Source: Zygnema circumcarinatum SAG 698-1b (Eukaryota; Plantae; Zygnematophyceae). Taken from it: a stretch of 64,000 nucleotides of DNA. The notes beneath the pieces are model-generated. The model saw only the letters and a list, made by a program, of their open reading frames with translations, was not told where the DNA came from and ran no database searches. Each line of letters starts with the position of its first letter. The stretch's first letter is position 1. Positions 8,582-14,166 of this stretch are shown piece after piece. The translations under genes were made by a program, and so were the position numbers. The stretch lies in assembly GCA_037447605.1 (NCBI GenBank), contig CM074814.1:496001-560000 (forward strand), written 5' to 3'.

Positions 8582-9481
8582 ATGGCGGCCTCCGAGCAGG
8601 AGCTCCTTCCTTCCCTTCCCTCCTTCGAGCTCCTCCAGCTGACACGTGGCAGCTGCTTTCCCTCTGTCGCCATCCTCCGCCTCTCCCGCCCCGCGCAGCG
8701 CAACGCCCTCACTCCCGCCATGCTGCTCGACCTGCAGGCCGCCATGGCTGCCCTGGACTCGGACCCGTCCGTACGAGTAGTGCTTCTAGAAGCTTCTGGA
8801 AGGCATTTCTGCGCCGGTATTGACGTGGCATGCCTGGCAGAGCTCACCCTCAGCTCTAATTCGGGTGGGAGAGGGATTGGGAGAGTGGGGGAGAGGGAGA
8901 GGGAGTGCGAAGGGAGGAGGAGAGAGAAGCTCCGGCGGGACATTCTCACCATGCAGGAAGCGATATCTTCGATAGAGAAGACTCGGAAACCCGTAATTGC
9001 AGCGATTCACGGCAGCTGTATTGGGGCTGGAGTGGATTTAATTGCAGCTTGTGATATAAGATATTGTACAAAAGATGCAGAATTTTCTATTAAGGAGGTA
9101 GACATGGCTCTAGCTGCAGATTTTGGGGTTTTGCAGAGGCTTCCAAGGTTAGTGGGAGAGGGAAACGCGAGAGAGCTCGCTTTAACAGGGAGGAGTTTTG
9201 GCGGGGAGGAGGCAAAGAAATTAGGGTTAGTGCAGGGAGTGTATGGAAGCGAGGAGGAGATGAGAGAGGGAGCGATGCAGGTGGCGACGGCGATCGCTGC
9301 GAAGTCTCCGTTAGCGGTAACGGGAACTAAGGCGGTGCTTCTCCATGCGCGCGATCACTCCGTTGCCGACGGCCTGGACTATGTGGCCACATGGAACAGC
9401 GCGACTCTCGTTTCGGAGGATATGAGAGAGGTAATGGCGGCACGGAGGGAGAGGAGGGCTCCACAGTTTGCTCGGTTGTGA
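8582..9481 (+). CDS. DCI1: Peroxisomal delta(3,5)-delta(2,4)-dienoyl-CoA isomerase (crotonase family), intronless
   Basis: Motifs GRHFCAGID, RKPVIAAIHGSCIGAGVDLIAACDIRYC, KEVDMALAADFGVLQRLP and DGLDYVATWNS; C-terminal ARL is a PTS1. The likely ATG is 8582; the ORF track starts upstream at a non-ATG codon. Confidence 0.9.
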   Translation: MAASEQELLPSLPSFELLQLTRGSCFPSVAILRLSRPAQRNALTPAMLLDLQAAMAALDSDPSVRVVLLEASGRHFCAGIDVACLAELTLSSNSGGRGIGRVGERERECEGRRREKLRRDILTMQEAISSIEKTRKPVIAAIHGSCIGAGVDLIAACDIRYCTKDAEFSIKEVDMALAADFGVLQRLPRLVGEGNARELALTGRSFGGEEAKKLGLVQGVYGSEEEMREGAMQVATAIAAKSPLAVTGTKAVLLHARDHSVADGLDYVATWNSATLVSEDMREVMAARRERRAPQFARL

Positions 9482-10079
9482 GAGAGGGAGAGGGAGAGGG
9501 AGAGGGAGAGAGAGGGAGGGAGAGGGAGAGGGAAAGGGGGTTAGAGGGCAAGGGAACGAAAGGGAATGGAAGTGAGACGGGTAGAGAGGGGAACGAGAGA
9601 GAGAGAGAGAGATATGTAGAGAGAGAGGGAGAGATGAAAGGAGGAGGGGGAGGGAAGCAGAAGAGAGGTGGCCTCCAAGACGTCTGGAGGTTTTTGGAGT
9701 TTTGGAGAATTTCATTTTTTGAAGTTTTTTTGGAATAGGGTTGACACGAAACCTTGTATTTTCAAGCACTTGGAGGGTAGAGTTCAGAGCCCTGTGAATA
9801 TTGTACATTAGGACTGGAGCTGGAGGTCCTTTCTCTCCCTCCTCCCTCTCTCCCACCCTCATCTTTTCTGCGAAAAAGCGCCCGAGCTGTTGGATTAGAG
9901 AGGGAGATCGATTTTTTTCGGGTTTTTAGGGATTGAGAAAGGGACTCAACCTTTCCGCCCCTCCTCACCCCTGTGTTTTCCTTTCAATTTTTCGCGGATA
10001 GTTGTATTTCTAGTTCCATGGCGAATTTTGAAAAGCTGTTTTTGTTTCTGTTTCTGTACAGTTTCGTATGTGAACTCAT

Positions 10080-13000
10080 TCAAATGATGTCGGCCTCTGT
10101 CTCTCTCCGTCCCACTCCCTCTCCCTCTCCCTTTCCCACTACTTCTTCCACTACATCTGCAACTCTCACTCCCTCTCCCTCTCCCTCGCCAATCTCTCCC
10201 TCCCCATCTCCCTCTCCCTCTCCCTCTCCTATCTCTCCCTCTCTCTCTCCTATCTCTCCCTTTCCCTCTCTTATATCTTTCTCAATTCCCACAAGCAACC
10301 TCCCCTTTTCTAAACTTCCGTTTGAACCCTGAATTTTCAAAACCCGTGGTTTGCTACCAATCACATTGAACCACAAAAAATCGAACCTGGAAAATATATT
10401 ACAGATCTGCACAACCCCACTTAAGGGGAGAAACGGAAAGGATGGGAGCGGACCTGCTAAACAACTTCGAACCCTAAAACCCTATGTCCTAACCAAAAAA
10501 AAAAGCTTAACCTAAAACCACCCATTTTAGCTTCAAGCAGGTCACCCTTCTCCTGTCGAATCGGTCCGAAAAAATCCCCTAAATGTGAAAGAGGTCGGAA
10601 ATTGGGAAAACAAAGACTGCCCAACGGGCCGTTGAACGGGCAAACGGTCGGTTTCCATGTGAGATTCCGTTGCGAATTGCGTTGAATTTGAAGCAGGCCT
10701 TGGCATAGAAACCGTGTCCGAGTCGACCAATGAGGGGCCCACAAAAAAGGCCCTTAACCTTCGGAACTCCAACCAGCGAACCCTAAATGGACCTAAGCTC
10801 AAAAATCCGTAAAATAGTGCTAAAAATATGATCACATATCCGAATAAAAATCCGAAATTTGGGTACAAAGCCCATAAGTGGGGGGTGAAGGGGATCTCGG
10901 CGACAAAGAAATCATGGTCGGAGGTTTCCCTGCAGTTACATGGCCACCCAAACCATCTCTTTCAAAAAAAAAAAAACTAAAAAGAAAGAATGAATCTAAA
11001 TAAAAATTATTAAACCCATTCATCGTTAGTGACTGATTCAACGAAAGAAGTTTGTCGGATTTCAAGGATGGGGTGACGAGTAAATCCCTCCAGCTCCTCT
11101 TCTCTCTCCCCTTTCCTACCCCCCGCTGCCCCCCCTGTTCCCATTCCCTCTCTTCATTAACTCACTCCTCAACCACCTCCACCTCACCTTCCATCCCTTT
11201 ATATCTCACTCTTCCCCTCTNNNNNNNNNNAGCCTCTCCCTCCCCCTCCCCCCCACCTCCAGAGGCGGTACCGGCGGACGGCCGTAACGACGGCGGACAC
11301 TCCCACGGACGCGCAGCGGACGTATGTCACTCCGTTCTCGACGGCTCGAACGGAACGGCTCTCCATGTGAAGGGGCCCAACGGAGCCCCAGTCAAGGCCC
11401 GCCTCCAGCAGCACATCAACTCTGCATAGAACGTTCGAATATGTGGAAAATGTGTGTTATTGATAATACATATTAACTTCCAACATAGTTTTAATTATTT
11501 AGTGAATAAAAGAGTTCAATTTTTTTTCTTCTTCCAACATAGAATTTTTTTTTTTTTTTTTTCGCCCTCTCTCCCTCTCACCCTTTCACTCCGGCTTGCC
11601 GAATGAAGTCCGGAAACTCCATGTCAGTTCCGATCACCGTTCCCAGTCTGCCCAATGGCGTGTCGACAACTGGGAGATCGGCCACTCCCCTCACGACACG
11701 TGTCTCCATCGCAACCGTCGGATGCGCCTTCGTGTAATCGATCGCCACTTCTCCACAAGGATTAAAAACCACGAGTTTATTCATACTCGAGAATATTTCT
11801 CCTTTCCGGGTTCGGTTCAAAATTTTTAGATACGTGACCGCAATGTACGTGCCCAAAAAACATTCTCCTTCCGACCCAAAATTTCCAAGCGAAATTTTTG
11901 GATCCAAAAAATTTCCATTCTGTCCCTTTTCGAGGAGTCCTTGCTCATCTTTGGCTTCTCCGGAAACCTCACCTTCAAATTTCTTTCCGTTAAACGAAAT
12001 TTTTCGTACCTGCCCGAGAAATTCTTTTTCTTCCTTCTCTCCCTCTATGAGAGCTGCTGTCTCCGACCACATCACTAATCGATCTCCCGCAATGACTCTT
12101 TCCGCGGTTAAATTTAATAATTTTTTCAAATCTGGGCCGGCTTCCGCTTTCACAGCCACAATACATGACACAGAATTTAATTCATTTTTCATTTGGGGCT
12201 CTCCGAATTGGTAGGAACCACTCGGAAAATAAGCTTCCCGGGCACTGCCCAGAAGTACGGTCAGGAAAAAAATTATTCCACAGACCTTCACATGGGTTAT
12301 GTAGGGCACATCTTCGTCCCAAACTCTCACGTTCAAGCTGCCCGACTGCATTTCCTTTCGGAAAAGTTCGTCGTAAATTACTGCCGCGGTCCACGCCATA
12401 AAAAAAATTATTCCGTCTGCCCCGAAAAAAACCGCCGTGAGGATGATGGGCCGGAAGGGAGTCACAGTAATGGCCGGATTTCCGAAGGCTCCCAAAGGGG
12501 ACAGCTGGCAGCCAGGCATTGGTCAACAAGGTCAGACAAAAGTCAAGTTAAGTCAAAGGAGTCAAGAAGTTCTTCCTTCAGGAATTGGAATTGGCCCACT
12601 CTCCCCTCCTCCCCTACCCCTCCCTCCTCCTCAAATCCCTGCCCCTTCCCTCTCTCTCCCCCACTCCTCTGCCCTCTGCCCTTCCAACACCTCCACCCCC
12701 TTCCGCTCCCCTACCTCTCCCCCCCTCTCTCTCCCTCTCCCCCCCTCTCTCCCTCTCCCCCCCCCTCTCTCCCGCTCCCCCCATCTCTCTCTCGCCCTCT
12801 ATCTCTCCCTTTCCCACTGCGCTTTCCTCCCCCTCTCTCCCACACACAATGCCCATTCTGTCCCACATCCCCATCCTCACCCCCTCTCCTCCCNNNNNNN
12901 NNNCCCCCCCCCCCCCCCTTTTCAGAACCCTATCGCCTCCCTCCCCCTTGAACCCTAAACCCACCGCAGCCGCCAGCCGCCATCCCGCCGTCCAAACCAC

Positions 13001-13387
13001 GGGGAAAACCAACGGTTGGCTCAGCCGAGCGCTTCCGTACAGCGTCCGAAAAGCGGAGTCGCAGAGGAAGGCGCTGGAAAGGAGGAGGGCTCCGCTGACC
13101 GAGGCCAAAAAAAGTGAGAAAAAACTTTTGAGGGGCTGCCCGGATGAGGGAGGGAGGGTGGGGAAGAAGGCGAGGGTATATGCGAGCGCCTGTGACAGAA
13201 CTGTAACTGAAAACAGGGCCAGCTGGCGGTGCCAACGGCCATGGAACGCGCGGGCGCGGTGGAGGAAGAGGAGGAGGAGGAGAGGGAGAGCCCAGGAGAG
13301 AGGGAGGAGAGGGCGGAGGCCATGGCCGAGGAAGGTGGAGAAGAAGGAGAGGAGGAGGAGGAGCCAGGGAGGGAGGCTGGCAGCCAT
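10080..13387 (-). CDS. Apolipoprotein N-acyltransferase (Lnt)-like multi-TM nitrilase-superfamily protein, 5 exons, about 733 aa
   Basis: Exons 13387-12965, 12504-11582, 11421-11257, 10929-10546, 10386-10080 (2202 nt, all GT-AG, in frame). N-terminal TM region (LVFPVVWTAGW..LSPLGAFGNPA), CN-hydrolase motifs MWSE, NKLVVFNPCG, YTKAHP, GRLGTVIGTDMEFP, RAVENG, and a C-terminal LYPNFGFLFGY TM. The last exon is less certain. Confidence 0.85.
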
Positions 13388-14166
13388 GGAGGGAGCGCGA
13401 GAGATAGGAGAGAGGGAGGGAGGGAGAGGGAGGGCCGGAGAGGGAGAGGAGTGGAAAGAGAGCGAGAAACAGGGAGGGGGACAGCAGTAGGAGTCGGTTC
13501 GCACGTGCGAGTTTTGATATGGAGGACAGGTGGCAATGAGAGCGCGAACGTTGGAGCGAGATTATGGGAGAGGACGACACGTGGCGCTGGATGGGTCCCA
13601 CAAACTAGGGTCAACGGATCCACTCATCGAGGATCTTTGAAAGTAGATCTGAACGGAGTGGACTCGTAGAGAGACCAAGATCAACTAAACTGTTCGACAT
13701 GGAGCTGGAAAGTGGAGTTGAACGGATTCTAACGGCACGGAACGGAAGGGAACGGAACGGGACGAAACGGGACGGAACGGAACAACAGTGAAGCAGCATA
13801 GAGCTGGGAAAGCAAAATTTGAGGTTGCAAAAAATCGAGATGTTCAAACGGGCCAAACAATTGGCTTTTTTATCTTCGAACACACAGAAATCCGTACAAC
13901 ATTTTCTTGGCATGAGACATCATGGCCCTTTACGTGCTATGTTTTGAACTATGTACTGAAACGTTTGAACGTTTTCATTTACAACAAAACATTAGAAAAT
14001 AACTGCCGATAAACAATTTCTTAAAATAAGACACAAAAACTATTAATAAAATTGGTCCTTGTTCAAGGACGAGGATTGGACGGGCCGACCAAGTTGCATA
14101 CGAGATTGGTCTCATCGAAAACGAGCGGGTCCGAGAAAGAGAGAGAGAAATACTAACATAGACGAT

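Follow-up and report, generated by a model that had tools for sequence, protein, structure and literature searches.

An expressed Lnt-like membrane nitrilase-fold gene of the alga Zygnema circumcarinatum encodes glycine at the position of the catalytic cysteine

Apolipoprotein N-acyltransferase (Lnt), which N-acylates diacylglyceryl-lipoproteins, is seen as an enzyme of the bacterial envelope; no Lgt/LspA/Lnt lipoprotein pathway is known from eukaryotes, so that the substrate of a eukaryotic protein of this kind must differ from that of Lnt. The gene considered here lies in a stretch of 64,000 nucleotides from Zygnema circumcarinatum SAG 698-1b (GenBank assembly GCA_037447605.1, contig CM074814.1, positions 496,001 to 560,000 of the forward strand), which is referred to as the window at its full length and within which all positions are counted. 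It is a four-exon nuclear gene on the minus strand (coding sequence 13387..10542, 632 codons) with three GT..AG introns of consistent phases. Lnt as described for E. coli and P. aeruginosa (structures 5N6H, 5N6M and 6NWR; model TIGR00546) shares with the window protein a membrane domain, a nitrilase-fold domain and a last transmembrane helix, together with a Glu, a Lys, a second Glu and an acidic residue two positions after the nucleophile (+2). On the other hand, identity in structural alignments amounts to about 11-18%, TIGR00546 scores lie far under the cut-off, and the window protein, which is the product of a nuclear, intron-bearing gene, has Gly in place of Cys387 and Thr in place of Tyr388. 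It has been demonstrated that Lnt follows a ping-pong reaction via a thioester on Cys387, that the mutant C387A is inactive while C387S acylates and fails at transfer, and that the Tyr following the nucleophile (+1) touches the membrane domain and not the substrate (PMC5500888). These engineered changes resemble the natural Gly of the window protein and of its relative P0003, and the natural Ser of the relative P0004, at the equivalent position; however, the former are laboratory constructs that are reported to be inactive (PMC5500888), whereas the natural variants carry further changes at the nucleophile elbow and have been maintained in evolution.

Two further groups of proteins allow comparison. 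Prokaryotic proteins annotated as 'nitrilase-related carbon-nitrogen hydrolase' with an LNT_N domain, namely P0001 and P0024 from Joint Genome Institute (JGI) metagenomes and P0002 from a metagenome-assembled genome of Promethearchaeota, are collinear with the window protein over its whole length at 24-25% identity and share the motifs DTPLGRL, IRQAG..VD.LL and RAVENG. For instance, in the metagenomic P0001 (LNT_N plus CN_hydrolase) exon 2 corresponds to residues 142-401 (BLASTP E 1e-19), exon 3 to the directly adjoining residues 402-451 (52% identity) and exon 4 to residues 460-502, and the WSE and Y.K motifs are common to both proteins. Unlike the window protein, these prokaryotic proteins keep the Cys (ICFD), have neither the insert of about 45 residues nor the conserved C-terminal tail, and fall on the opposite side of a tree split supported at 100/100. 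The named eukaryotic members, from Selaginella (XP_024539505), Closterium (CAI5930754 and CAI5930776), Pleodorina (GLC43321), Mortierella (KAF9134723) and Basidiobolus (KAK9729531), share with the window gene its clade, its architecture and, in the Selaginella and Closterium genes, intron positions, but they possess a full Glu-Lys-Cys triad and a QPSWTWG motif, which the window gene and the two relatives closest to it lack.

At the nucleophile site, where the family consensus is C-F/Y-D, the window protein reads Gly-Thr-Asp, and this Gly of exon 2 aligns opposite the Cys of relatives and opposite the catalytic Cys of formamidase 5g3o. Judged from these alignments, the Glu-Lys-Cys triad of Lnt is incomplete in the window protein, in agreement with the original prediction for this locus, which had also named the Glu of WSE and the Lys of YTKAHP as intact; both occupy the aligned catalytic columns. 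The residues concerned are encoded as follows.

11629..11631, minus strand: Gly at the nucleophile position, GGA in VIGTDMEFP, followed by ACT (Thr) and GAC (Asp).
12061..12063, minus strand: Glu at the catalytic position, GAG in WSE; invariant E290 of alignment A1.
11728..11730, minus strand: Lys at the catalytic position, AAG in YTKAHP; invariant K352 of alignment A1.
11704..11706, minus strand: second conserved Glu, GAG in AMETR; the family consensus and the majority of the Cys-less rows likewise have Glu in this column.

The AMETR Glu is taken as the counterpart of the family 'VE' motif, and the catalytic Glu column holds Glu in all of 158 aligned rows except 5 gapped ones. Comparison with read data, which the original prediction had proposed for the nucleophile codon, was made with assembled contigs from four runs of four studies, all of which cover the codon region. 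The GGA at 11631-11629 shows no differing letter in X4 and X6 (DNA, from studies that are not the likely source of the window sequence) or in X7 and X8 (RNA-like), and TGC or TGT was found in none of them; since contigs lose rare variants, this establishes the presence of GGA rather than the absence of a minor allele. Single-nucleotide differences in X4, that is, 11912 T>A (N198I, in the variable insert of exon 2), 12120 A>T (L129I), the synonymous 12469 A>G and a further one at 12550 within intron 1, indicate by their occurrence elsewhere in exon 2 that X4 represents another allele.

Across the 158 aligned sequences the triad Glu-Lys-Cys is present in 138, Gly stands at the nucleophile column in 10 (nine with Lys and one with Arg) and Ser in one. 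The +1 residue is aromatic or His in 130 of the 143 Cys-type rows and Ser or Thr in a single one, as opposed to Ser or Thr in 5 of the 11 Cys-less rows, which belong to three independent lineages (the window protein with P0003 and P0004; P0032; P0096). Mapped on the trees, the Gly state requires three changes inside the eukaryote clade, and in the prokaryote-like half a further four or so. Cys-to-Gly changes are found in unrelated branches such as P0045 (Ectocarpus fasciculatus), P0096, P0032, P0063, P0111, P0130, P0150 and P0151 (Chloroflexota), which nearly always retain Glu and Lys. As to whether Gly is fixed among orthologues, a question raised by the original prediction, the nearest one (P0003) does have Gly, whereas P0004 has Ser and the Closterium and Selaginella proteins have Cys. 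The Gly codon of the window gene (GGA) and the Ser codon of P0004 (TCT) are not interconvertible in one step; Cys was probably lost twice within the Cys-less subclade, or once with a later change, and the +1 change may plausibly have followed a common route from Phe via Ser to Thr. The QPSWTWG motif is also lost in the window protein, where it reads EAGLDWG, and in its orthologue.

Evolutionary constraint on the Cys-less protein was estimated by comparing the window gene with the orthologue transcript L001. Nonsynonymous divergence (dN) is 0.38-0.41 in exons 2-4 and synonymous divergence (dS) lies beyond saturation, for which reason no dN/dS ratio is given. The reading frame is intact in the window gene and in L001, a lineage-specific C-terminal tail motif is common to both, and L001 keeps Gly-Thr. 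A dN of about 0.4 at saturated dS, together with intact frames, indicates that the Cys-less protein has long been maintained.

Sequence comparison makes it probable that the window protein is a pseudoenzyme which retains the Lnt fold and pocket. The sequences show that in the Cys-less sub-lineage the nucleophile elbow was remodelled, Cys giving way to Gly and the next aromatic residue to Thr, with decay of the QPSWTW motif and retention of both Glu residues, the Lys and the +2 Asp. Having no thiol, such a protein would form no thioester acyl-enzyme, which is the basis of the Lnt ping-pong reaction; the fold and its lipid or substrate pocket would instead serve binding, sensing or partnering with another protein, and purifying selection would maintain the protein in this state. 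Several observations weigh against this interpretation. The window protein has all four of these polar residues, which are also kept in 9 of the 10 Gly-type sequences, from several independent lineages; since it is not obvious that a pure binder would need them, their retention hints at residual or altered chemistry, and a substitute nucleophile may be located near the pocket. In addition, the joint between exons 1 and 2 is not seen in the RNA contigs of X7 and X8.

It is also conceivable, albeit with appreciably lower probability, that the protein is still an enzyme, rewired in such a way that the part of the thiol is taken by the +1 hydroxyl residue (Thr in the window protein, Ser in relatives) or by a water molecule activated by Glu. 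It would then catalyse hydrolysis or direct acyl transfer, its substrate being a membrane lipid or a lumenal or extracellular compound. The conservation of the four polar residues in Cys-less sequences, the excess of +1 hydroxyls among them relative to Cys-type rows and the Ser at the nucleophile position of P0004 are consistent with such a change, whereas half of the Gly-type sequences have Phe at +1, the pocket-adjacent QPSWTW motif has decayed as well, and in nucleophile-elbow folds the +1 side chain is generally directed away from the nucleophile site. The contact of the +1 Tyr of Lnt with the membrane domain and the transfer deficiency of C387S likewise argue against it (PMC5500888). A related proposal, which we regard as rather unlikely on the sequences at hand, is that the Cys-less streptophyte subclade represents a neo-functionalised enzyme or lipid sensor and not a dead enzyme. 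Its members combine Gly or Ser at the nucleophile position with Ser or Thr at +1 and retain Glu-Lys-Glu-Asp, and at least two more eukaryotic lineages of the family came independently to Gly accompanied by a +1 hydroxyl; if true, the proposal would suggest that a change of mechanism has been selected repeatedly in this eukaryote-wide Lnt-like family. The original prediction had listed a pseudoenzyme, a binding or sensing protein and the use of another nucleophile, which proved to be the right set of options for a protein of Lnt architecture that lacks the nucleophile Cys. The loss of Cys is genuine, shared by the nearest orthologue and under constraint.

The architecture that the proposed pseudoenzyme would retain comprises 6-7 N-terminal transmembrane helices, a CN-hydrolase domain and one C-terminal transmembrane helix, with hydropathy peaks for four such helices in exon 1, two in exon 2 and one in exon 4; the nitrilase-fold domain is predicted to lie on the non-cytosolic side. 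The exons of the window gene were searched and aligned one by one, which is to be kept in mind for the scores that follow. The best NCBIfam model for the relatives tested is TIGR00546, whose cut-off of 132.9 bits is not reached by full-length relatives (63-106 bits) or by exon 2 alone (18.2 bits) and exon 3 alone (20.8 bits, positions 361-391 of the model), and the Gly-type orthologue gave no match to it at E 1e-3. With PF00795, a domain divided over exons 2-4, exon 2 alone scores 21.0 bits against a gathering score of 23.2, the open reading frame (ORF) of L001 41.4 bits and the Selaginella homologue 45.2 bits; the best relatives carry PF20154 (LNT_N) in addition to PF00795, and a family profile matches Lnt and soluble amidases in the PDB. 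In an AlphaFold2 model of the Selaginella homologue (mean predicted local distance difference test score, pLDDT, 90.3) the 24 best Foldseek matches are full-length Lnt structures (TM-scores 0.61-0.72), and soluble nitrilases match the domain only. For the Gly-type orthologue the core is modelled with confidence (pLDDT of at least 90 in most blocks), Lnt is the top match, soluble nitrilases and amidases match the domain, and a strand (478-484) is followed by a helix (485-489) with Gly485 at the elbow (pLDDT about 95), so that for this orthologue an alpha-beta-beta-alpha sandwich with the strand-turn-helix elbow is predicted. Modelling of the active site, as suggested by the original prediction, was carried out on the orthologue. 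Scores below the TIGR00546 cut-off and Lnt as the best structural match indicate a protein that is Lnt-like in architecture but not an Lnt equivalog; the initial description as an Lnt-like membrane nitrilase-fold protein is upheld by hydropathy, CN-hydrolase matches, the LNT_N domain of relatives and the two models.

An exhaustive search found 446 relatives. The nearest is P0003 (51% identity, an RNA contig of another organism, with Gly-Thr-Asp), followed by P0004 (38% identity, a genomic contig, with Ser-Ser-Asp), while Cys-type near relatives come from Selaginella, Closterium, Mortierella and Basidiobolus and the same half of the tree includes Rhizopus, Ectocarpus, Paulinella, Pleodorina, Chromochloris and MMETSP protists. 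A word-index protein search with exon 2 gave two distant matches only, and one with residues 340-560 of P0003 gave no further orthologue. In this regard, P0175 (L004, SRR32069680), which came from a streptophyte profile and has 60 member sequences, was considered as the product of the window gene itself, both having 632 residues, and was rejected, as it is a Cys-type homologue encoded by a different gene. A tblastn search detected one locus of the family in this window and no second one.

Trees were built from 34 rows (the careful tree), 75 rows (a quick one) and 143 rows, the window being represented by exon 2, and the two larger trees agree with the careful one. In the latter, eukaryotic sequences form a 100/100 clade against the prokaryotic relatives, within which a streptophyte subclade (96/94) joins P0004 and the pair of the window protein with P0003 (100/98) to a group of Closterium with Selaginella, P0175 and P0005, arranged as [P0004, (window, P0003)] + [Closterium, (Selaginella, (P0175, P0005))]. 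Intron 2 (phase 2, before V-D-V) is matched in position and phase by introns of Closterium L006, Selaginella L005 and contig L002; intron 3 shares both with the Selaginella gene and intron 1 shares both with L002; and the GC content of the gene resembles that of neighbouring genes. Clade placement, common introns and ordinary composition together argue for vertical descent within streptophytes and not for a recent bacterial gain. The original prediction had described the gene as bacterial-type, intron-acquired and possibly horizontally transferred, and a recent transfer of a bacterial Lnt gene followed by intron gain could be supported by the named word-search matches, which are prokaryotic or metagenomic Lnt-like proteins, and by the unfamiliarity of the family in land plants. 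However, given that the exhaustive search brought up closer eukaryotic relatives, that the eukaryote clade and streptophyte subclade are well supported, that three intron positions are common to other streptophyte genes, that composition is ordinary and that prokaryotic relatives are only 24-25% identical, we consider such a transfer highly improbable. Vertical inheritance in green plants, which the original prediction had named among the outcomes that would refute it, is largely borne out, although the distribution looks patchy and not ubiquitous.

Selaginella has three family loci (P0006, P0174 and P0026), two of them on one scaffold, and Closterium NIES-64 has two family genes (P0009 and P0153) on one contig; the family tends toward local duplication. 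P0088, from the amoebozoan Mastigamoeba balamuthi, groups in the prokaryote-like half outside the main eukaryotic clade and is possibly a separate acquisition.

The gene model, given below from the 5' end, describes a real, spliced and expressed nuclear gene.

12965..13387, minus strand: exon 1, coding, 141 codons with ATG at 13387-13385; four transmembrane helices and the LVFP..W segment of the membrane domain.
12505..12964, minus strand: intron 1, phase 0, GT..AG, GA-rich and of low complexity; contains the assembly gap 12894-12903.
11582..12504, minus strand: exon 2, 307 codons plus 2 bases; two transmembrane helices and most of the CN-hydrolase domain.
11422..11581, minus strand: intron 2, phase 2 (GG|A), GT..AG; spliced in X8 record 21 and X7 record 17.
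11257..11421, minus strand: exon 3, end of the CN-hydrolase domain (VDVLL...RAVENG...VRC.S.G.S), with joints seen in RNA.
10930..11256, minus strand: intron 3, phase 2 (AG|G), GT..AG; contains the assembly gap 11221-11230 and appears as a 327-base skip in X7 and X8.
10542..10929, minus strand: exon 4, coding part; last strand, C-terminal transmembrane helix and cytosolic tail, stop TGA at 10544-10542.
10379..10541, minus strand: 3' untranslated part; X8 record 21 begins at 10379 and X7 record 15 at 10403.
10080..10412, minus strand: GA-rich ORF downstream of the stop, non-coding for the Lnt-like protein and without an equivalent in the orthologue.

The exon 2/3 and exon 3/4 joints are seen exactly in contigs of X7 and X8, which are RNA-like and come from different studies, and exon 2, which carries the lineage-specific insert of about 45 residues, is covered by X7 record 18 and X8 record 21. 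At the end of exon 1, X8 record 22 starts exactly at 12965, the predicted boundary, and tblastn alignments of P0175, P0006, the L001 ORF and L002 exon 1 stop at 12959-12980. The exon 1/2 joint is backed by the spliced transcript L001, in which the spacing from LVFP to SP.G is equal, by the L002 intron of equal place and phase and by continuous homologue residues. In X7 and X8, RNA-like contigs run on past exon 2 and reach 12606 and 12712 within intron 1; the intron 1-retained form (12505-12712) has an in-frame TGA and then an ATG at 12519, and would yield an N-terminally truncated protein without the first transmembrane helices. Intron 2 is kept in X7 record 16 beside the spliced record 17, and splicing of the gene looks incomplete in the X7 sample.

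Of the two assembly gaps, that in intron 3 is spanned by X4 and X6 DNA contigs, in which about 15 letters are absent at this place, and is spliced out in RNA, whereas that in intron 1 is bridged by no contig, the contigs breaking in low-complexity sequence on both sides. In tblastn alignment with the window, residues of P0175 meet at the three introns as 145|147, 467|468 and 517|522. The gaps conceal no coding sequence, since both are intronic and homologue residues are continuous across introns 1 and 3. GA-rich tracts (CT-rich on the other strand) at 10100-10290, 11100-11260, 12610-12960 and 13400-13520 occupy introns, the 5' leader and the downstream spacer, and both gaps and most contig breaks lie inside them. 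An artefact through a codon or gap error, or a dying gene or drifting pseudogene, as the two gaps within the gene span and the retention of introns 1 and 2 in RNA contigs could suggest, is most improbable in view of the GGA found identically in two DNA and two RNA-like runs, the intronic position of the gaps with homologues collinear across them, the intact frame, the correct splicing and the retention of Gly-Thr at saturated synonymous sites in an orthologue of 51% identity.

At the 3' end, exon 4 shares 54% identity over 127 codons with the L001 ORF and carries the tail motifs RRLRAFFVGP and LFSQFP..FRGFF; the protein ends in ...FRGFFRTDSTGEG. The acidic Gly-Glu tail that had been assigned to the protein corresponds to the GA-rich ORF and does not belong to it, because this ORF follows the TGA at 10544-10542, RNA contigs run unspliced from 10928 through this stop to 10379 or 10403, and the orthologue terminates at the same ...LFSQFP..F.FRGFF... 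motif. Consequently, the originally proposed span of 10080-13387 is correct at its start codon, but the coding sequence ends 462 bases inside 10080.

The X7 contig that ends at 10403 has 28 loose letters matching 9401-9428 exactly, which implies a skip of 974 bases; a 3' untranslated splice from 10403 to 9428, seen in this one contig, was rejected, as it involves 28 letters only and no canonical splice signals, and the letters reflect either a non-canonical splice or an assembly chimera. An X8 contig of word depth 385 covers 9900-9959 and then departs from the window sequence; it belongs to a different transcript, which is strongly represented and lies immediately downstream of the gene.

As judged from aligned sequences, the family of the window gene is a sister family of Lnt that extends over the eukaryotes, normally endowed with a Glu-Lys-Cys triad and present in fungi, chlorophytes, Closterium, Selaginella, Ectocarpus and Paulinella. 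In the literature library searched, we found no paper on eukaryotic Lnt-like proteins or on nitrilase-fold pseudoenzymes. Streptophyte algae and a lycophyte are among the eukaryotes in which this sister family with the architecture of Lnt occurs, and one branch of the plant lineage has lost the nucleophile, yet is conserved and expressed. This branch is a natural experiment in which the conversion of nitrilase-fold thiol enzymes into pseudoenzymes, or a change in their mechanism, can be studied, and may serve as an entry point to the function of the eukaryotic family, for example in lipid or protein N-acylation in the secretory pathway.

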